A DNA stretch of 64,000 nt from Oikopleura dioica (Eukaryota; Animalia; Chordata): contig OU015568.1 in the NCBI GenBank assembly GCA_907165135.1, positions 15,449,208 to 15,513,207 on the forward strand, in the 5' to 3' direction. The position numbers and the translations under genes were made by a program. Numbering within the stretch: the stretch's first letter is position 1; every line of letters begins with the position of its first letter. The notes below the pieces were generated by a model, which was given only the letters and a program-made list of their open reading frames with translations, was not told where the DNA came from and made no database searches. Shown here piece after piece: positions 16,494 to 54,819 of this stretch.

Positions 16494-18682
16494 TCAATTT
16501 CCAAAATGGAGTTGATGATTAAGAAGTTGTTCTAACTTCTCCTCAGTATAGGAAAGAGAAATTGTATAAGCTTGAGGGAGTAAATACCACTTGTTTTTTT
16601 CCATGCTACTAACATTTTCATTAACCAGAGTCATAAATTCTTGATCTTTCCCAATATATCGGAAATCGCCCGTTTCTTCACTGTAGGATCTTGAAACCAT
16701 TTCATCATTGGCGTAATAAGGATTTCTTAGCGGTATTTTCACTGTCATTTTATCTGTTTTCAAATCGGTATTTTGAACGATGTATTCGTCGTTCTCAATC
16801 CTATCAACAACCATTTGATGAAAGTAGACATCATTGTCATCACGTAGATAAGCCGCTGTGACAGTAAGTGGACGTTCGAATTTGTAATTTTCATGAAGCA
16901 AAACTTCAAAACTATTTATATACGTTTAAACCGAATGTTAAACCTGATTCAAAGTCGAAAATAGTTTCTTCCAAGTCGGTTTTCAGTAATTTTATCATGT
17001 CCCAGCCACTTGGACAGATATATGTCTTGAACTTTAGCCGTCTAAGAAGTAAATCGATCTCACTTTGTTGAAAATCTTTCTCCAAGTCAGTCGGGTTAAG
17101 ATTGAGACCCGCCAAGCTTCGAGGATAAACAATCATTGTCAATGCAGAGAATATATATTCAAATGACCACATAAAATTTTCTTTAACACCAAGATCGTTT
17201 TTAATGGCGTGTCGTATAAGTGTTGTTATCGTTATTGGAACGCAGAGACTGGTGTCTCTCTGATCAAGTACATTTCTTGTTATATAATTGAAGTCTGAGC
17301 ATGTATATTTATTTAAGCTTTGACGAAGATCTGACATTCCAATAGATTTTGTCAGATTTGGATCGTCAAGCATCAATGATGGCGAAGCGTTTTTTAATGA
17401 TACTATTGAAGAAAATTGTCTCAATTGCCACCATGTTGCATATTTTCGTTTTAGCCACTGTGCATTAGAAGACTAAAACTTCGAAAATCATAAGGATTTA
17501 TCAAATAATTACTTCTAAAATTGATGAAATCTCCTCTTCCCCTTTCTCGTCGATTGGATTGAAAATAAGACTCCAAGCTGTTTTCCAATCGCAGAACATG
17601 AAAATCACCCAATTTGAAGACATTTCGGAGCCATAATTTATGCCGCAATTATTTTAGGTTCGCCATTTTTTAACATAACATTATCTGGCTTTATATCCCG
17701 GTGCGTAATGTTTTGTGCAAACAAATATTGTTCTGCCAAGCCAATTTTACTTGACATAGTTTTTCGTTCGAGTACGGTCAAATCTTCATCCTTGAGTCGC
17801 TTTCGTAAATTTTCATCGCAGAACTCCATTATTGTTATCCAACCTATGCAATCATCGCATTCAAAATCAAGACGGTAAAAAATTTCGACATTAACAAAAT
17901 GTTTGATGATATTATCATGATAAGGGATCGTATTTGGCCAGCTTTCAGTTTCATCGCAAAATGGTGTGTACTCTTAATGACTTTCTTGAACTTAATGGTC
18001 AATCAAGCATACCGGAGGAGAAATGAAATCGAAAATCTAAATCTTCAAAAGAAATTTGATTCGTGAATAAAGCTGGATCGAATGCTTGAACTCTTACTGC
18101 CATTTCAATTTGTCCAAATATCTGTTTGACGACTAAAGCTTCTCCTCCAACAGCTAAAACATCCACCAGTAATGAATTATCCAGAAACCATCTTCCTCGC
18201 TCCTCTTTCAACTCCGATCTGTATATGGTTTTATCCATCAAGGCTGGATTATTATTGAGAAGCGGAATTTGAAATCCATTGGGGTCTATCTCTGATTGCA
18301 TATTCCCAAAATTAGAAAACCCATAGAAATTTAAGTCTGCCTGCATATCTGGAATTCGCCACGCAACTTCTATCTTTGATGGAGCTTTTCCATTTGGGGT
18401 CTCTCCAGATTTAGCAAAAAGTTTGACCCAGCCTCCAAGTTGCATGAATCTTCTTCCAAGCTCCATTCGACCGATAGATAAAATAAGTCTATCCTTATCA
18501 TTTCTAGATGTCTCCCGTTTTATTTTCGGAAAAAAATTCTTCAACCAGTTTTCGACGTTCTCTTTAGTCAATGGCGGTGGGTGAGTTCCAATTTTACACG
18601 AAACAAGAACATTTTCGCAAGAATCATCTGATTCGTACTCAAAAAAATCTTGCCGCGGTCTTAGCTCATATTGACGTATCAT
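16494..18682 (-). pseudogene. Protein kinase-papain-like cysteine protease fusion, copy 1 (DFG/activation segment deleted)
   Basis: GGEALVV...MAVRVQ, HRDIKPDNVML, then DQRDTSLC and FHQMVVDRIENDEYIVQN. At about 17650 the sequence jumps from PKII into the CDWKTAW region out of frame, relative to copy 2. Start codon uncertain. Confidence 0.75.
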
Positions 18683-20473
18683 ATGGACTCCAGACAAAAG
18701 TGTAAACGCTGAACTCGCAAAACTTTCTTTGTTTTTCTCAACGAAGTGCGAGTTACATCTTAGCTCCTGTTTATTTTCATAGAATGCAAGTTTCTCTCGA
18801 AAGATTTGTAAAGACAAGTGAAAGTTTCGAAGAAAATTGTTGACTTTCTCGCCCGAAAACAATTTAAGAAATAACAAGCACGCGTGGATAAAGAATCTCA
18901 AATCTGGCGCGTGTTTAAACGTTGGGTTGGTGATTTTACTCTTACGACTTAGATTTCACGCTTCTCGTCGGGAGACGCGCGCCGCAGCAGAAAAGTACAC
19001 CCTTCGATAATTCCCTTGCTATTTTCTCTTGCATATGTATTTTGGCAGGGCATCGAATTTTCCGCTCGCAAATGCGCGCCTTTAGATATGCACAAATTTT
19101 GGAAATCAAATTCAAATCCAAGCGCAAATGATTCTTTATCCAATTTTCTTACTTGAAAGGAGCTAGCCGTAATTCTGTTTTTGATGCCATGATCCAACGC
19201 CGTCAAAATGACCTTTGCTTTCCGAGAAAGCGGCCCCTGTCACTTTCGAAAGCAATCGAATTTGCGGACAACTCAAAAAGTCATCGAATATCAACTTGGG
19301 CCGCTGTTCAAAATCAGCGAAAAACTGCAAAATCGCGATTTTAAGCAACTTTCAGTATATTCTCTTGTAAGCTTCTCGTGAGTTTGTTTTTCACCTTTTT
19401 AAATGAGCAAAAACGACTAATCTTTTCTATTAAATAATTTGTAAATATTCGTTAGAACGTGTTGGATAAGGTGACCGGATTGAAATTGACAAGGTAACGA
19501 GCAGCCGCTTGTTCCGCAAAGCAAGTGACAATTGATCATGTTATGTGTTCACTCGCTATTACAAGTATTTTTTGTAACAAAGCGGCGAACAGATCTTAGT
19601 TTACTTGTAACTCATTATCCATTGTAATAATTTGTTATAATAATTTATCCAACGTCATTATTTTTAATGATTTACGCTCAGCATTAAAACTTCTTGCTTT
19701 CCCTGACGACTTTTATAATCAAGAAACGGGAAATAAGCAAAGGTTGCACTTTTTCTTTTGGCCATGATAAAATTGCGAATGCAAGTTTCTTTTTCAAGTT
19801 GCATCTGCTTGTTACAAGAAAAGAAGACAAGATAAGTGGGAGAATAATTGGCGTTAAACGTATGTATCACAATAAGGGACATCGTCAATTACGTCCGCAA
19901 GACGGGAAGGGGGCAAAATCTCACGGCTCTTCTGACGTACACTTGCTGTATATTTCGCGGTTTACCGAAACGACGCAATTTTCACTTGAATAGCTTATTG
20001 AATCGCAATCTTCGGAAAACAGAGTGACACCCTTATTTCACTTCGCAAAATAAGGGCCTTAGCCTTACTCTCAACCTAACCCTAACCCTACGAAACTGAG
20101 TCTTGTTGGGCGGTGAGTAATTAAAGGTGTTTTAAATTAGGATGAACTCTCTCCTTGCGCCGTGGCGGGTGAAAACGAAAAGATGGAACTTCGCGACCTT
20201 TGTCGCTTTATCACTCCACCTGATCAGTGCACTCTCGGACCTAATGATTTTACGCTGAACTCGTCACTTCCATACTTATCCCATTTTCACCAGCGTCATT
20301 ATTTAGAAAGATTCTGGCATCGAGACAAAGTGAACAAAATGGCACTTTGTTTGTGCAAATCTTATCAATTAGAAATCTCAGTCTCTTTATTTGGTCTTTA
20401 CAGAATCGTTTTTAATGAAAAATAACAGTAAAAACAACATTGTCCAATGACAAATTCAGAAATTTTAAAAATT

Positions 20474-20671
20474 CTAGTTTTTCTTTGAGAAAAAATTCAA
20501 AATAGCTTTTTTGTAGCGCCTCCTGAATTTTCTTGCTTGCCGGTTTGTAGACTCGCTAGATCTGCGTCTCATACTGTAAGCTACGTTATTTCCAAGTCTG
20601 TTGTATCCAATCAAATCGGCGGCGACGAAGGTCGTGGATGATAATGCCAGGGTGATGATGGAAGGCTTCAT
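20474..20671 (-). CDS. Small secreted cationic peptide precursor (65 aa)
   Basis: Signal-like N-terminus, RRR sites, basic C-terminal segment; TATATAAA about 50 bp upstream and AATAAA at about 20386-20391 (minus strand). Confidence 0.65.
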   Translation of the reverse strand: MKPSIITLALSSTTFVAADLIGYNRLGNNVAYSMRRRSSESTNRQARKFRRRYKKAILNFFSKKN

Positions 20672-21925
20672 CTTGGGAAAATACTATTACAGTATAAATT
20701 CAATGGAAAAGCGTCTTGATTTATATACAAAAAGTTACATAAGAGTTCTTACGTAACACTTTATGATAATATCCTTCCATATGTCACTGCCAAGGATGCA
20801 GAATCGTCGCTGTTGTAGACAGGATATTCTTCCACCTTGATTCCATTTTTGGGATCGATTCTAACAGAAAACGAAGCACTGATCTCATCCTGTCTTGTCG
20901 ACGAGTTTTGCCATCTCTTTTATGTATGCTCAGCTCGATAAATTATTATTCTTAGAATTCTAGTTGATGTCCGGTCCAAACAAGTTCCACTATCTTATCA
21001 AAAATGGGATGAAAGAGTGTTGATCTTGTTCCAATCCTTCCAGAACAACTTCCTACTTACCCTTGGCTTTGGCGTGCAGACAGCAGATCGTCGAAAAATC
21101 CACTGCCCAAAGTTATTTTATTCCGTGGCATACATTTTTCTGGCGCTGGAAAAGCAAAATTCACTGTATTAAACTTTAAATTGAAATCTTGCCACTTGGA
21201 GTAATCTCTAAGGGCCATCGTCAAAAGGGTTCCAAAAGGAGCTTTCAGCATCCACGTATAATCCGATGCCGATCTGTATGTGATAATCTACCCATTAATA
21301 TTCACACACGAAGCTCATCCCTAAGTGCCCAGTCGTGGCGAGCTCCTTAGGTCCTTACCATTCCCCGGCCCGCTGCCAGTTTCAAACTTTTCTGACCCTA
21401 GCAACAGTTAAACTAGCAGAAATCAACAATCTTGATTTCCAAACGCACAAATGCAAATCGAGGCCATAGCTGGTGTGGACTAGGAAAGTTGGAGTGAGCA
21501 TGAATTTGCAAAATTATGGCAAGATGTTCTGCGCGGAATGCGTTTATACGGCCGTGGGAAAACCTCCAGCGCGAGAGATGGCAGCCAGACACTAAATCGC
21601 GCAATTTTTGTGTTTTCGAAAAATGTTCAGCATGATTTTGAACGATTACGAGCTGTTTTGAGCGCTAAAAGGGATACGATCGGTTTAATCAAATTTTTAT
21701 GACGTATTTTTAGTTTAGTATGTGCTTCGTTTTCTCTATAATCATTCGAAATATGAAGAAAAAAAAAGGAAATTTATAACATATTTTGTTGGGCGGATAT
21801 TGCCTGTCATGCGCACTCTATTCTGACTTGATTCAAGAGAGCACTAAAAATTCTTACAATGCTAATTTGCCTTTTCATAAGCGTGCGAAACGCCTATATA
21901 GAGATCAGTTCGTCAATTTTCGGAT

Positions 21926-22581
21926 ATGTCTGAAGTGATTGAAAATGAGTCCAGTGGAACAGAAGATCTCGACGAGACTATTGAGACGAGTACTAGAAAG
22001 CTGAAAACAGATAGAATCGCTTTGATAAAGAATAAAAACCGCCAAAGAAAAAGAAAAATGAGGGAGATTGACGCCGAGCTCGCAGAAACTCGGGATAAAA
22101 ATCAAAAGCTCGAGCATGATTTTAAAGAGAAACAGGATCAAATCGCTTCTTTGAGGGAAAATCTTCGTAAAAATGTGAAAGAAAAGGATGAAAATAACAA
22201 GAAGCTTGCGAAACTTCTCAATGATAAGAAAATTTTACAACTAGTGCATGAACGAGAATCGCTGGATGTTCTCGGTAAATACCGTTTTTCTTCGAAAGAA
22301 ACGGGGTAAAATCGTATTTTTAGAAGAGATTGACGAAGACTTCATTAAGGAAGCGGTTGATTGTAGAGTTTGTTTGGATTCATACAATTCTTCGACAAGG
22401 TAGGAAATTCAGTATTGGTCACATTTGCAGGTTGATATACTGTGAATTTTTTAGGCAAAAAGTATGTCTGATTTCCTGTGGCCACCAATTTTGCAATCAG
22501 TGCATCAACTCCTTAATCGAAAAATTTTGTCCCACCTGTAGAAGAGAATTCAGCGAAAATCAAATTCTAAAGCTTTTCTGA
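21926..22581 (+). CDS. Coiled-coil protein with C-terminal C3HC4 RING finger (3 exons)
   Basis: Exons 21926-22274, 22324-22399 and 22455-22581 with GT-AG introns give CRVC...CGHQFCNQC...CPTCR. TATA at about 21895, AATAAA at about 22584. Confidence 0.9.
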
Positions 22582-25013
22582 GCAATAAAATAAGCCTTTC
22601 TATGAAATAATAAGCAACAATTTTAAAAGTCAATTTAAGTATTCTATAGAACGAAAAATTGGTTGAGTAAGAGACCCCTATTTTAGACTCTTTCGTCAAG
22701 TATGCAGGCAGCTGACATTATCTAAACGGATTTAGGGATTTGGCCCTTTTGAGGATCTAGGAAGGTCATCGACTCGCTGCGGTCAGTCCAGATTTCACTT
22801 TCTAAGACGATAAGACTCTTCTAAGGCCCAGTTTCTAACGCAATCGTCCTACATCTTTACATTTTTGAAGCAATATTCAAAATTGCAAATGTTCAATTTC
22901 AGAAAAAAAAGAATAGATTACGTAAAACGGCGAATAATTGCTCCCCGTCATGAAAACAGTGATGGATGTCCGTTCATAGAAACATCAATCGACAGGTGTT
23001 GCTTGCGCTCATGGCTGACAGAAGTTGCGACTGCCGCGCTAAATTCATTATGATTAACAATTTGTGCATTACAAGGATGATCCCAGCTTATGCGCACCAG
23101 TCTGCCAAGAGCGTTGTCCGACGCAAAGTACCACTCGACTGTTATCTCCTTATTAAACCCTTACTCAGCCGAATTGTCATGCGCTGCTGATGTTGCCGTT
23201 CTACTGTACTGTAATTAAGAAATTGGGATATCGACAGTTTCTTTTTTGGTTGAAGCTCTTTGGATCTTATCTTGTTTTTTGACTGTATTACAGGCTGTTC
23301 AGAAGCTATGAAAAAGATTTACAAGTCGGCTTAGGGAATGCTCGATGACGTATTTTTTGCTTGTTAGAGCTTCAATTTTTCTGATAGCTTAGTATTTAGG
23401 AGGACTAAGAAGATTAAGTCTTTCTGAAAATTGGCTCATTTCTTAAAACAAACTTAAGGGTAGATGGCTCGAATCAACGAGAAATTAGGGCAATATTGAC
23501 CGAGATTTGGACCAAATTCTAGACAAATCAGATTTCCGCATTCGGCTGGTAGGCCAATCAGATTTCATAAAAAAAGTTAAGAGTTCTGTCTCGACCCCAA
23601 AATTAATGTCTTATTTTTTTCATGAAAAGCAAAAAAAAAATTTTTTTATCCTTTTTCTGACTCATATTTGAAGAAAATTTTCAATAAGTAAAAGTGTAAA
23701 TTGAATCAAGGAAGATGACTTTGGGTCGGTACGTTGCCAAAATGTTTGAAAAACATTGTTATAATGCAAATGCAAGGGATGAAGTTTCTTCCGCGTATTC
23801 TGCCACATCCTGACAACAAGCTGGACACCGTTGACCTTATCACGTGAACGTGTTCCCAGCGTTTTACATTTTATTTTGAAAAGATTCGATTAGGCCTCCA
23901 AGAAACTTTCCCTAACGGTCAATTAGTGATATTTAGCAGGTTGGAGGAGAAGCAAAAATTCGCTGAGTTTTAGAAATCTGAGACGAGAGGAACGACCAAA
24001 TTATGGGTTTATCAGCTCAATTTGGACAGTTTAGCTATTTTTCCTAAAGCAACTGTATCTTGCTTATTATTTGGCATTTGGAAAACTTCTCCTTTTTTAA
24101 AAACAAAAGAAATCAAAATGAGTTTTTTTCTGCTCTTGAACTTTAAATGACATGATTAATCGTCCTCAGATAAAATGTCGAAAAGTTAACTAATCTTACA
24201 AATCGGTCAAAGTATAAACACACGTTTTTGACATTGAGGTTCCGTTTCATTTGACGATAATTCATCATCAAAAATTTGATAAATGAGAAGCTTCTTTAGA
24301 AGAAAAAAACTACAGAATAGAAAACGCTCCATTTTGGTAACTACGGTCAGTGAAGGCTGACGGTTGAATCGAGCTTTATCTCCTTAATTTGCGGCGAAAT
24401 GGGCAGGCTCGGTTCTTTGAAACGTTCGAGCGCGGGACATTGGCGATGGAGTCCCCGAGTTCTAGTGGCGACGGGCTCTATCTGTTATTTCTGTCAAAGT
24501 GGCCGCCTCGAAAGAGCTCAACAACTTGGAAACAAGTGAACCGGCTGCGCTCAATTTACATTTCCAATTGCTTCTCTTTTTCTAATTGAAATTGAGTTTC
24601 GCGTTTAGAATAAAAAATCAGCTGTGAAAAGAAAGATCGAAAAAAGGGGGTAAAATTCTGCTGGAATCCGAATTCAAGCATCGTATCTCAGAAATAAAAG
24701 AATCCTTGCAATTTCCGTCATCACTTCGCAAAAATTCTTGATCGAAGATTTTCGTGATTTTCCCACGATTTTTTGGTACGACTCATTTCCCCGATTTTTT
24801 TCGTTGTAGCTAGTATGATGGTTTCAAAGCATCTTTATCAAGTGTCCTTGTTTTTTCGTATCAGCAGAGAGGTAATTAAAATCTTCTTCGTCATCATTTG
24901 GTGTCAACCTATAAAACCGGCTCTTTCGAGCAATAAAACCTGACGACAGTAAAAACTGATAGGAGGTTGTTATCATAGCGGAAAGCATTCGTATTCATCA
25001 TATATTTTCCAAC

Positions 25014-27418
25014 ATGAAGGTCACTTCTCACCAAAAAGAATTAACTAAAGAAAAAGTCGTGTCATGGTTAGAAAATTTTACAAAGAAATTGGAAAGATGG
25101 ACGAGCAGAGATGATTTGGATAGATTGATTTTATCCGCTGAGAGAATGTATTTTCAAGAAGAAGATGGTTCTGAGTGGACACAAATGGAAATCCAAGATG
25201 AAGAGGCGATCGTATTATTTTCAGGAGAGCGTGAAAAATTTAAGTTGAATTTGTTTCAGAAGAAAATTCTCGCTGAAAATCCTGAGTTTCGCGGAAGAAT
25301 TATTCGACGAACAGATTTAAAAGAAGAAGTTGGGGATTGGATTCTCGACAATTCTTTTCAGGAGAAATTACTATCAAGTGGTGGAGAAGCGATCGTTTTG
25401 AAAGAGAAATTTGAAGGACTTGAGCTTGCTGTTCGAGTTCAATGCTTTGATCCAGCGTTATTTACAAAGAAAAAGAATGAAGAAATGAAATTTGAAATCA
25501 ATCTTTCAAAAGACTTTGAAATCGCCGAAGATTTTATGCCATATAGTCCATCTCTAGGCCTCGGACGTAAAAAATCATCACCACCAGCCGGTCGTCGTAC
25601 GGTAACAAGAGTAGGCTCATTCGAAATCTCTTAAAAAGGGCTTTCTGTTAAGCTAATAAAAAAACTGGGCCCTGTCCTCCTTTTTCGAGATATTTGATTT
25701 TGAAGGTAAGCTTCGAAAAATATTTTTCAAAATAACTCGTAACAGAAAGGGACGTCTTTTTTACGTCCGAGGCCTATCCATCTCCCGAAGATCAACGGCG
25801 AAACGGACTAAATGGCATTCCATCGCATCCAAATGTGATCAAACACTTTTGCAATATAGAGATCTTCTCAACTATTGATGATGATCAGGAAGATTGCCTT
25901 GGCTGGGTGACAATCATGGAATGTTGTGATGCTGATCTAAGAAGCAGGCTGAAGGCGAATGACTTAACTTTAGATGAAAGAAAAAGAATTGCGATTGGAG
26001 TCTGGAATGGATTGGAATATTTCGGGAAAATAGGGATCAGGCATGAAGACCAAAAGCCCGAAAATATTCTTCTCAGAGATGGAGAAGCAATATGGATCGA
26101 TTTCGGCATACTCAGAGATGTAACGGGAAGAAAGAGTTATCGTCAAATGGGTTACACGCGTCGAGGAAGCAAGTACATGAGGATCAGTAGCCTTTGTGAG
26201 TTTGCAGTAGACGTATTCTTTTTATATTCGCTTTTTATCTAGATGCTGGCTCTGCCGCATTTGCTGGTAGTTACTCACTTTGTGGTAGGCCAGGTATTGG
26301 TGGTAATATCATGTATATTCTTATTCTTTGCGACTGGAAGACTGGATGGTATCTATGTTTTCATCCAATTGATGATGGTACACAAACAATGATTGGCGAA
26401 GAGCTCGAGGTAAGAGGATCACCTAAAATCGCTTTTAAAAAATACAAAAGGCCTGTAATGCAGAGTGGCTGACAGTTACTGAGCTAAGCAAATACTCAAA
26501 GCCAGTACAAAAAATAGAAAATGTATCGAAAATTGTTTCGCTCAAAAACATTCCTTCTCATATTTGTCTTGACGACGAGAATTTGACGAAGTCTTATGGG
26601 ATGGCATTCCTGAAACAACGTCTGACCAGATATCTAAATAAGGATTTTGAAAATTTGACAAAGAATGTTCTCGATCAAGGAGACAGCGATCTTTGCGTTC
26701 CCATTTCGGTCAGTGTTCTTATCCGATGGGCAATCAAGAATGATGTGAAGCTTGACGAGTCGTACATGGACTATATTCTGCAAACATATTTCAGTATTGA
26801 TATAATTTTCCCTACATTAACGATGATTGTTTATCCTCGGAGTCTTGCTGGATTTACTCTCAACCCGAAACGAGAAGAAAAAGGATTCCAAGAAAACAAA
26901 ATCGAGCTTCTTTTGAAGCGACTCAAGTATCCAACTTATTTCTTTGAAAGTGGATGGAATATGATCAGAAATTTTGGAACGACGATGGTCAATGCTGAGT
27001 TTGACTATGAAGAAGGTTCACTTTTAAGTAAAGTCTTTTATTTATTCTTGATTTAGTACTTCTTCACGAAAAATTTTCCTTTTCCCGTCCATTAACTGTA
27101 ACTGGCGCCTATCTTAACACTGACGGCAGCGTTGACTTTCACCAAATGACTGTAGATCGGATCGAGAATAAAGAGTATATTCTTCAAAATACTCTCACCT
27201 CTCATTCTCCATTCCAAATAAAAATTCCGCTAAAAAGACAATACTACGCTACATACGAAATGATGGAAGAGTGTTTAGATTTTTTCAACGATTATGTTTT
27301 CTATGGACCAAACAACGAGTTTTTAATGCTGGCTAACGAAGAATTCAACATGAAAGAAAAAACATGGTATCTTTTACCACAAGCTTACTCAATCGCTCTT
27401 ACCCCTGTACAATTGTAA
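25014..27418 (+). CDS. Protein kinase-papain-like cysteine protease fusion, copy 2 (interrupted by a MITE, otherwise intact)
   Basis: GGEAIV...LAVRVQ, HEDQKPENILL, IDFG, then DQGDSDLC and FHQMTVDRIENKEYILQN. Short GT-AG introns. Removing the MITE plus one target-duplication copy restores the frame (PYSPSPEDQRRNG). Confidence 0.8.
25555..25776. mobile_element. hAT-type MITE inserted in a coding exon
   Basis: TIR TAGGCCTCGGACGTAAAAAA; exact 8-bp target duplication TCCATCTC at 25547-25554 and 25777-25784. Confidence 0.92.
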
Positions 27419-27860
27419 ATAGAAGATCATTTTCAACTCATGAGAAGATCTAAGCACCTGTTACTTAAGAATTAAAGAGCGAAAGACACGAACGAAGCTT
27501 GTTAGGTGTCCATTTCTTAACTTAATACGCCCTTAATATCCTTAGGAGACGCATCTTAAACGCCTTCGCGCAATTCACGTTTTCATAATATTGCCCTTTC
27601 GAATTCGGTAAATTTTAAACAAATTAAGTGCGAGGGGGCGTAAACTAAATATGAAAAGAAAACCGAGACGATTATTAATTAAGAATTCTGCGCGAAATGC
27701 AAATTTATTCTATTTTCTTGCTGAAAAACATGCAAAATTACAAGCAAATTCTCAAATCATCATTTGAGTCAAGATTCGTTTGCTTCAAAAACAGCATCAT
27801 CGGAAAATCCATCAGATGGTTCTTCTTGCTCAGAGGTCAACTGACAGGACATCTTATTCT

Positions 27861-53042: not shown

Positions 53043-53408
53043 TTAATTATTCGTTAAAGTGATTGAATAAGCTTGAGGCAGAAGATACCAACTTTCTGGG
53101 TCCATTTTTCCAAATTTTTCGTTTGCTAAATACAGGACGTAATTTCCAGAATCATTCCAACCAGTGTAAATATAATCGTTTAATTTCGGATTGAAGCAAT
53201 CACTCATCATTTGCTCAGAAGCATAATACCGGTTCTGTCGCGGAATTCGAAGAAGTGGACTGTGATTTTGATTATCAGAATTTTGAATAACGTATTCATC
53301 ACTTGGAATGTCGACGTCGTCAAGTACCATTTGATGAAAATACACTTCGCCGTCGGTAAAATAAGCGCCGGTGACTGTTACTGGACGATCGGTTATGAAA
53401 TTTTCATC
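53043..53408 (-). pseudogene. Last exon of a third kinase-papain fusion copy, cut off by insertions
   Basis: ENF..RPVTVTGAY..YFHQMVLD..EYVIQNS..WYLLPQAYSITL matches the last exons of copies 1 and 2. Confidence 0.85.
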
Positions 53409-54641
53409 CAGTGTTTGAAAAAAGAATGTGCGCGGGCAGCGAGCGGGCGAGCGGGGCGCGGGCGGGCGCGCTCGTCCATCCGACCACCTAAAATTTTGAC
53501 AAATTTTGCCCGCGCCCATCCGCCCATCAAAAAATCAAGCCTCATACTGCTCGCACGCGCACGTACCGCTCATGCGCCCCCGCTCGCCCGCCCTCCCCTC
53601 CCATGCTCGCCCCTTGCCCATGAGTGCATGTGATCGGACCGGAATTATCCACTAAAACGGACTCATTTTACACAGAACAAGGACTCATTTTACATAAAAT
53701 TGGGACTTATTTTACACAGAAAAATAGAAAAACGTTTATTTTCTGTGTAAAATAAGTCCGTATTCTATGTAAAAAAGGCCCCTTTTCTGTGTAGATTACG
53801 TCCGTTTTCTTTGTTGGTCGGTCGGTGGGTGGTGGGTTTTTGGTCCAGACAGTTTACTACCATCTACTACCAGCAAAAGTAGTTATTTTAAATAACTTAT
53901 CAAACAAGATCCGTCGTTTTCCCATTAACATTTTTAAATATTAAAAAGTAGATAAAAGAAAATAATGCGAAATAAGAGAATGCTACAACATACTACCATT
54001 ACTACCACCCGATTTAGTAATTTAAGGCTTGGGTGGTCGATTTGGCCCAAGCAGAGCTCATAAACTCTGGACTTATGAATGCTAGAATACCCAGTTATTG
54101 CTAAAAATAAAGATCTATCCTAGATCTTCTGAATTACAGAAGGTTTTTTTGTTCTGCCAAGATTTCTGCCAAATTTCGGAGTTTTTGAGCCTTAAATATT
54201 GGCCATTTTTGCGATTTTGGCCGAGATGCCAACTTTGAAGCCTCCAGAAGTGATTTTTTTCTTCAGAAGATCTAGGATAGATCTTTATTTTTAGCCATTA
54301 CTGGGTATTCTAGCATTTATAAGTCCAGAGTTGATGAGCTCTGCTTTGGGCCAAATCGACCACCCTGGCCTTAATGAATTCCTACGTTACTACGCTACAT
54401 ACTTTCAAACCCTGTTTTGGTCGGTTTTGTTCTTTTTACGCGTCTTTCTGTTGGTTTTCTTTGAGTAGAATTAAGCGCCCCGGGAGGGTGAGCGGGCGGG
54501 CGCGGGAGGGTGCCCGCGCACATCCGTCCATCCCAAAATCTGGCCTTTACGTGCCCGCTCCCATCCGCCCTTCCGAAAAATCGGACCCTTCGCGCCCGCG
54601 CTCGTCCGACCATTCGATTCTCAGGCTTTTTTCAAACACTG
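53409..54641. mobile_element. Non-autonomous hAT-type element (1233 bp) with GC-rich subterminal repeats
   Basis: 16-bp TIR CAGTGTTTGAAAAAAG; exact 8-bp target duplication TTTTCATC at 53401-53408 and 54642-54649. Confidence 0.92.
54026..54370. mobile_element. TTAA-flanked palindromic MITE nested in the hAT element
   Basis: Long near-perfect inverted arms (GGGTGGTCGATTTGGCCC...AAAGATCTATCCTAGATCTTCTGAA) flanked by TTAA. Confidence 0.85.
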
Positions 54642-54662
54642 TTTTCATCGTAGTCTGTGGTA

Positions 54663-54819
54663 ATTCGTCGGGGTCGCCCCGACAAATGAAATATGAAATA
54701 ACAGTCATTCGTCGGGGTCGATCCCGACAGATTGAAGACCAAAAATACACCAATTCGTCGGGGTCGAACAATTGAATACGACGAATCAGTGTTCACTCAA
54801 ACACCTATTCGTCGGGGTC
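54663..54819 (+). repeat. Four spaced copies of ATTCGTCGGGGTC(G), two forming hairpins
   Basis: Starts at 54663, 54707, 54753 and 54807; partial inverted copy CGACGAAT at about 54779. Confidence 0.85.

Follow-up and report, generated by a model that had tools for sequence, protein, structure and literature searches.

A kinase-like protein family with a predicted papain-like C-terminal domain in Oikopleura dioica, with two probably impaired full-length copies and a relic exon in one 64-kb window

The window analysed here, i.e. the whole stretch of 64,000 nucleotides at positions 15,449,208–15,513,207 (forward strand) of contig OU015568.1 from the Oikopleura dioica OKI2018_I69 assembly (GCA_907165135.1), carries members of a multicopy gene family in which a protein kinase-like segment is followed by a domain with papain-like motifs. 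The family is represented by a head-to-head pair—copy 1 (16494–18682, minus strand) and copy 2 (25014–27418, plus strand)—and by one fragment. The window has a G+C content of 39% and very short introns, the whole genome comprising 64.3 Mb in 19 contigs; for the same assembly, a median intron length of 49 bp and a share of 11% non-canonical introns have been reported (PMC8008620). All six introns of copies 1 and 2 are of the GT-AG type, 40–56 nt long and found at equivalent positions in both copies. To map the exons, a full-length family protein served as the tblastn query, complemented by direct reading of the sequence; the genes of the window were searched exon by exon, and the folds were predicted on a paralogue open reading frame (ORF) and on a database protein. 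In window positions, the features are as follows:

18013–18682, minus strand: copy 1, exon 1, with a putative ATG at 18682, the N-terminal extension and the kinase N-lobe (tblastn and sequence reading); VGGEALV at 18131–18151 and MAVRVQA, with Arg at the beta3 position, at 18083–18103
17973–18012, minus strand: copy 1, intron 1, 40 nt, GT-AG
17641–17972, minus strand: copy 1, exon 2, from the kinase hinge to the catalytic loop, HRDIKPDN at 17680–17703 (Pfam Pkinase, 36.3 bits, E 5.4e-9)
17638–17650, minus strand: copy 1, lesion, with the DFG motif and activation segment gone, a change of frame and TAA at 17638–17640
17513–17638, minus strand: copy 1, remnant of the kinase C-lobe (WVIFMFCDWKTAWSL...), in a frame different from that of exon 2
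16944–17457, minus strand: copy 1, linker and first half of the predicted papain-fold domain, Gln at 17260–17262, Cys at 17242–17244, YPRSLAG
16494–16903, minus strand: copy 1, last exon, beta half of the predicted papain-fold domain, His at 16818–16820, Asn at 16770–16772, WYLLPQAY
25014–25554, plus strand: copy 2, exon 1 part a, with ATG at 25014, the N-terminal extension and the kinase N-lobe (tblastn and sequence reading); SGGEAIV at 25377–25397 and LAVRVQC at 25425–25445
25555–25776, unstranded: 222-bp miniature inverted-repeat transposable element (MITE) within exon 1 of copy 2 (search for inverted and direct repeats)
25785–26195, plus strand: copy 2, exon 1 part b, with the hinge, HEDQKPEN at 26042–26065, DFG at 26093–26113 and the SYRQMGYTRRGSK segment
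26196–26242, plus strand: copy 2, GT-AG intron before exon 2
26243–26409, plus strand: copy 2, exon 2, kinase C-lobe (AGSAAF..., LCDWKTGWYL)
26410–26465, plus strand: copy 2, GT-AG intron after exon 2
26466–27015, plus strand: copy 2, exon 3, linker and first half of the predicted papain-fold domain, Gln at 26676–26678, Cys at 26694–26696, YPRSLAG
27016–27056, plus strand: copy 2, intron, 41 nt, GT-AG
27057–27418, plus strand: copy 2, exon 4, His at 27140–27142, Asn at 27188–27190, WYLLPQAY, stop TAA at 27416–27418
53043–53411, minus strand: third copy, a lone last exon (FHQMVLDDVDIPSDEYVIQN ... WYLLPQAY; tblastn)

In both full-length copies, DQxxxxxC and then HQMxVDRIENxEYIxQN are found downstream of the kinase segment, as stated in a preliminary description of this DNA. 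The kinase assignment is significant, the exons of copy 2 (exon 1 part b, 41.5 bits, E 1.4e-10) and copy 1 (36.3 bits) exceeding the Pfam PF00069 cut-off of 31.7 bits, and the spacings given there—6 from Gln to Cys and 16 from His to Asn—are the same in copies 1 and 2, the motifs occurring family-wide and not by chance. Concerning the fusion, the reading frames indicate that in the paralogues the kinase and peptidase parts are one protein: a single ORF of 635 residues in paralogue L031 holds a Pkinase match above the cut-off together with the Gln- and Cys-bearing half of the peptidase domain, a similar single ORF with both parts is present in L032, and in P0078, a divergent protein from a metagenome, one ORF spans the kinase C-lobe and the entire peptidase domain. 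The view that both parts belong to the same spliced gene thus holds for these three, but in the window the frame of copy 1 is broken and that of copy 2 is interrupted by the MITE.

The C-terminal domain is predicted to adopt a papain-like fold (clan CA), its membership in C1, C39 or EDR1 not being established. In the family alignment of this domain, which has 97 rows made of exon pieces and database fragments, the putative oxyanion Gln is conserved in 59/62 sequences, the Cys in 56/62 (five have Ser), the His in 44/46 and the Gln following the His in 45/45. The fold was predicted by AF2 for L029:1111–2049, a paralogue containing the whole domain in one open frame, using the 97-row alignment; the identity of this segment to the two domain exons is 52% and 64% for copy 2 and 46% and 48% for copy 1. 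The model obtained (mean predicted local distance difference test score, pLDDT, 82; predicted template modelling score, pTM, 0.72) has the Cys78 opening the helix 78–93, the His224 in the strand 221–231 and the Asn240 after the strand 235–239. It thus displays the arrangement that characterises clan CA, i.e. an oxyanion Gln and a Cys at a helix N-terminus followed by His and Asn/Asp on the beta lobe, in the papain order and spacing, which speaks in favour of the papain-like fold proposed from the motifs. The Foldseek alignments start at residue 70 of the model and residues 17, 21 and 9 of caricain, cathepsin B and ComA, respectively; in the residue numbering of these enzymes, the Gln72 and Cys78 of the model fall on the Gln and Cys of their active sites. 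Among the ESM Atlas clusters, those of C39, C39_2 and BtrH_N are nearest.

As for the relationship to the papain family C1, the similarity comprises the order and spacing of Gln-6-Cys and His-16-Asn, the Cys at the helix N-terminus and the long helical left lobe, the distance from Cys to His being approximately 146 residues in the family versus 134 in papain. The identity to C1 members (in C1A, papain, cathepsins and Der f 1), however, is only 9–13%, the CGSCW and NSW motifs are lacking, and the family has its own invariant segments, YPRSLAG-NLNP and WYLLPQAY, in a domain located C-terminally in a kinase-like protein. The signal peptide and propeptide that mark C1A are absent, the domain following the kinase part and the linker in one ORF and the N-termini being hydrophilic, just as had been deduced for the copies of the window. 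In this respect the family resembles the cytosolic subfamily C1B, represented by bleomycin hydrolase and aminopeptidase C, which also has neither, and to which it exhibits a weak in-register similarity around (N/D)QKxSxxC: the family profile aligned DQKDSNLCVP with NQKQSGRCW of aminopeptidase C, in register with the catalytic residues, albeit with an E-value of 1.2, and PF03051 was found below the threshold in 5/97 members (best E 0.0011; at most 16.6 bits versus the cut-off of 22). It may be added that the search of the whole genome with PF03051, six-frame and exon by exon, gave no match at E up to 0.01; this genome may lack a cytosolic C1B peptidase of the usual type or contain only a very divergent one.

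The peptidase domains C39 and C39_2, which act on bacteriocin leaders in ABC exporters (PCAT1, ComA) and to which the nearest ESM Atlas clusters belong (TM score of 0.69 by target), share with the family the spacing of Gln-6-Cys and 16 residues from the His to the third residue, as well as the fusion in one chain to an ATP-binding machine. They differ, however, in being bacterial, in having only about 80 residues between the Cys and the His, in using Asp as the third residue and in preceding a transporter, whereas the O. dioica family has Asn and a kinase context; the fold alone is shared. Among the 97 members no match was found to PF00112, to PF03412 and PF13529 (C39 and C39_2), or, at E up to 10, to PF14381 (EDR1). 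The last of these domains is another papain-like fold, which is often fused to kinases in plants according to a 2023 survey of papain-like enzymes (PMC10318531), so that the pairing of a kinase with a papain-like domain has a precedent. In EDR1/CTR1-type plant kinases the EDR1 domain—belonging to a different subgroup of the papain-like superfamily—is N-terminal to a canonical kinase, whereas in the O. dioica family the predicted papain fold is C-terminal to an atypical one. The statement that no characterised animal protein has such an architecture is consistent with the fact that no paper describing the kinase-peptidase family was found, but the plant kinases provide the reverse-order counterpart.

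With regard to the kinase-like part, the PF00069 match spans only the region from the hinge to DFG, the N-lobe remaining undetected at the sequence level. The bilobal kinase fold was recognised in the AF2 model of residues 1–400 of a family protein, P0001 (92-row alignment; pLDDT 87.4, pTM 0.87), i.e. on a paralogue and not on the product of the window copies themselves; Foldseek related this model with a probability of 1.0 and E of 1e-7 to ULK2, PKR, GAK, DAPK and IRAK4, favouring no kinase family. The first approximately 130 residues of P0001 consist of helices and strands and were modelled as one unit with the kinase. The catalytic positions are conserved throughout the family, namely the Asp in 38/38, the Lys in 36/36, the Asn in 36/36 and the Asp of DFG in 34/35 sequences. 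The HxDxKxxN motif reads HEDQKPEN in copy 2 and HRDIKPDN in copy 1, DFG being present in copy 2 only and deleted from copy 1.

Most likely, copy 1 represents a pseudogene or yields truncated products, since its kinase part has suffered a deletion, a frameshift and a stop. Its exon 2 ends by reading ...GEPKIIAA and then the stop; the approximately 48 residues corresponding to P0001 residues 285–332 are absent between 17650 and 17638, which tblastn shows as a shift from frame -2 to frame -1, accompanied by a gap in the query. All of the approximately 40 other family copies fetched possess the DFG motif and activation segment. No AG dinucleotide occurs from the stop to the conserved FCDWK, and the GT donors upstream of the stop are all of the wrong phase, so that no splice, canonical or of the NN-AG type, is seen that would rescue the frame. 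The kinase part of copy 1 keeps approximately 85% of the family-conserved columns, i.e. the low end for the family, the values being 97% for the linker and first peptidase exon and 95% for the last exon, which terminates with TGA at 16494–16496.

For copy 2 to be intact, the young MITE in its exon 1 would have to be spliced out. The element has perfect 20-bp terminal inverted repeats (TAGGCCTCGGACGTAAAAAA) and is flanked by an 8-bp target duplication, TCCATCTC, at 25547–25554 and 25777–25784. Removing the MITE together with one duplication restores the frame, whereas reading through leads to TAA at 25632–25634. At least 20 further copies of the element with 94–97% identity are present in the genome, from which the insertion is judged to be young. 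In these other copies, the two matching parts are approximately 96 nt further apart than in the MITE of copy 2, which looks like an internal-deletion derivative. The element could mark either an exon that has been broken or an intron that is being formed. That copy 2 still functions, with the MITE removed as a new intron in the manner of many non-canonical introns of O. dioica, is possible but on the doubtful side: the MITE plus one duplication make up 230 nt with several possible in-frame NN-AG or GC-AG excisions, non-canonical introns account for the 11% mentioned above (PMC8008620), and the copy retains 93–100% of the family-conserved residues (97% in exon 3 and 100% in exon 4). No RNA read, however, covers copy 2 or any joint there, and, the MITE family being young, a freshly broken gene would show equal conservation.

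In their peptidase domains, copies 1 and 2 each retain 95–100% of the positions conserved in the family, and their closest paralogues share only about 56–66% of protein identity with them, a distance at which saturation of the synonymous sites would be expected. The retained positions fit recent damage in both copies, with an earlier relaxation of the kinase part of copy 1.

The third copy appears as a relic exon. The His and Asn reported for it are indeed present, as are 21/21 of the conserved columns, but the two residues are 18 apart, the beta-hairpin being two residues longer, and only the last exon exists; neither a kinase nor a Cys exon was found upstream of it within the 64-kb window. 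Two G+C-rich stretches, one directly upstream of this exon (53393–53633) and one approximately 1 kb beyond (54374–54775), contain ORFs that read as Ala/Arg/Pro-rich repeats; they look like fragments of a repeated element, which perhaps severed the third copy from its other exons.

The multicopy nature of the family was borne out by the genome: the Cys exon of copy 1 matches at least 130 places in the 64.3 Mb, many of them clustered and some with stops or fragmentary, the clusters including about a dozen copies at C1:16.13–16.36 Mb and about 18 at C2:11.65–12.69 Mb. It should be noted that two places, L002 (C1:5969849–5970343) and L003 (C16:2604–3098), have identical Cys-exon scores and identities; the contig of the latter is small, and the two are probably one locus assembled twice (a haplotig), not two genes. 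The taxonomic range, which the preliminary description had left to be checked, proved to be narrow. Scanning 1.84 billion representative proteins by HMMER with the peptidase domain yielded 101 matches, mostly short, among which O. dioica was the only named organism—an absence from other named organisms that holds for the sensitivity of HMMER with a single query sequence—the remainder coming from marine metagenome contigs of 1–3.7 kb with a similar G+C content. One of the O. dioica database proteins matching the family is CAG5112304, a gene model of OKI2018_I69. A word-based protein search with the 635-residue paralogue ORF found two O. dioica proteins only. Among the metagenome sources are one contig from Tara Oceans and one from JGI on which two family genes stand in tandem. 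On the latter (L075:94–1889; 3659 nt, 39% G+C), the terminal portion of a divergent member is followed by the N-terminal part and kinase of a second one; the contig originates probably from another appendicularian or Oikopleura lineage.

With more than 100 copies, many of them fragmentary or broken, and with neighbourhoods rich in transposons, the family might be regarded as the cargo of a mobile element and not as a host gene family. This is highly improbable: the copies are typically 45–60% identical in protein, i.e. far older than active transposon copies, they have common intron positions and occur in tandem clusters, and no common terminal repeats were seen around copies 1 and 2, although no systematic search was made.

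Based on the above results, the reading to which we assign a probability of roughly 70% is that the family, known only from Oikopleura and unassigned marine DNA, consists in its intact members of one cytosolic chain joining a kinase-like and a papain-fold domain, and that both full-length copies of the window are impaired. An intact member would have approximately 640–700 residues, beginning with a helical/beta extension that would pack on the kinase; the second part would be a very divergent domain of the protein-kinase fold, keeping the Asp, Lys and Asn of the catalytic loop and the Asp of DFG with Arg at beta3, and the third, separated by a linker, a papain-fold (clan CA) domain of very divergent sequence with its oxyanion Gln, its Cys at a helix N-terminus and its His and Asn on a beta-hairpin.

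Several points, nevertheless, count against this reading. The fold of the peptidase domain was predicted on the paralogue L029, the ORF of which reads through a 14-residue in-frame intron, and not on the spliced products of the window. Foldseek comparison of this model with the PDB gave nothing below E 0.05, the weak top rows being staphopain, AvrPphB and C39 domains, and the protease exons and domain match no curated peptidase family significantly (Pfam, PDB sequences). The third catalytic residue varies, being Asn in 38/50 sequences, and the nucleophile Cys is replaced by Ser in five members. In the kinase part, the beta3 position is occupied by Arg in 40/41 family copies, in place of the ATP-anchoring Lys, and the P0001 model has no helix between beta3 (149–157) and beta4, i.e. 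no alphaC helix. Finally, none of the listed sequencing runs contained the stretch, and the region 24700–27700, which includes copy 2, had zero coverage at 90% likeness in three RNA runs of the poly-A type and one single-cell run, only 36-nt stretches of reads continuing into other sequence being matched there. The runs, about half of each poly-A run having been covered, bear the same species label only and may come from another lineage, for which reason the missing reads of copy 2 are weak evidence. The loose end of one RNA read translates as ...DQKSSNLCVPIS, indicating that at least one paralogue is transcribed.

The five Ser-for-Cys cases (LSVP versus LCVP) are found in the paralogues L013 (C4:5411706), L027 (C5:15523998) and L032 (C4:3231039) and in the proteins P0004 and P0043, all of which are otherwise well conserved; a serine nucleophile may have arisen repeatedly, or these forms may be inactive.

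The pair of the beta3 Lys and alphaC Glu, the hallmark of active kinases, is thus lacking in the family, and phosphotransfer is doubtful, Arg at beta3 being the classic substitution of dead kinases and the alphaC helix missing from the model. Judging from the conserved positions and the model, the kinase part would be an atypical kinase or a pseudokinase, probably still binding a nucleotide. In KSR-type pseudokinases, Arg replaces the beta3 (VAIK) Lys and the catalytic loop and DFG are kept, as in this family; no specific relationship to them is detectable, however, the nearest folds being scattered over many kinase groups and the family model having an N-terminal extension instead of the alphaC helix. 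It is an unlikely alternative that the whole protein is a pseudoenzyme scaffold with two catalytically dead binding modules—a KSR-like pseudokinase and a peptidase-like recognition domain—serving as an adaptor or a decoy and not as an enzyme. The nearly universal beta3 Arg, the absent helix, the Ser for Cys in several members, the variable Asn and the lack of matches in curated families would agree with this, but the Asp, Lys, Asn and DFG Asp of the kinase part are invariant or nearly so, and the Gln, Cys and His of the peptidase part are 90–96% conserved in copies only approximately 50% identical, i.e. the pattern expected from purifying selection on catalysis.

Returning to the kinase-like/papain-fold chain, we consider its intact members to be fairly likely cytosolic thiol (iso)peptidases. 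With less assurance, the kinase-like part might regulate or target the peptidase without being a conventional kinase; most likely it would serve as a nucleotide-binding or regulatory module, or as a weak atypical kinase, for the peptidase.

Between copies 1 and 2 lies a small plus-strand gene (21926–22581) in which a coiled-coil exon precedes a C3HC4 RING finger, the latter recognised as zf-C3HC4 with 22.7 bits versus the cut-off of 21. A more specific proposal, namely that the peptidase deconjugates ubiquitin or a ubiquitin-like protein as an isopeptidase and is not a general endopeptidase, with the kinase-like part for its targeting or regulation, is rather improbable; the cytosolic nature of the protein, the lack of a propeptide and the presence of the RING-finger gene between the two copies, which may be a coincidence, would be compatible with it.

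The signalling or defence role put forward in the preliminary description is an inference only, and a role in defence or conflict is a speculation drawn only from the expansion, clustering and decay of the family. O. dioica is a chordate with a much reduced set of classical immune genes. In an expanded system of cytosolic surveillance or conflict, a nucleotide-sensing switch derived from a kinase might in each member gate a papain-fold protease cleaving or deconjugating host or pathogen targets, and the numerous diverged, clustered and frequently broken copies might result from an arms race; we regard this as quite unlikely.

The two full-length copies of the window picture how members of the family may die or be remodelled, one by an internal deletion and the other by a fresh MITE insertion. 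If the intact members are active, they would constitute an undescribed coupling, within a single animal protein, of a kinase-type switch with a thiol protease, and a new family within the papain superfamily, as well as a tractable case of fast lineage-specific growth and decay of a gene family in the smallest genome of a free-living chordate.

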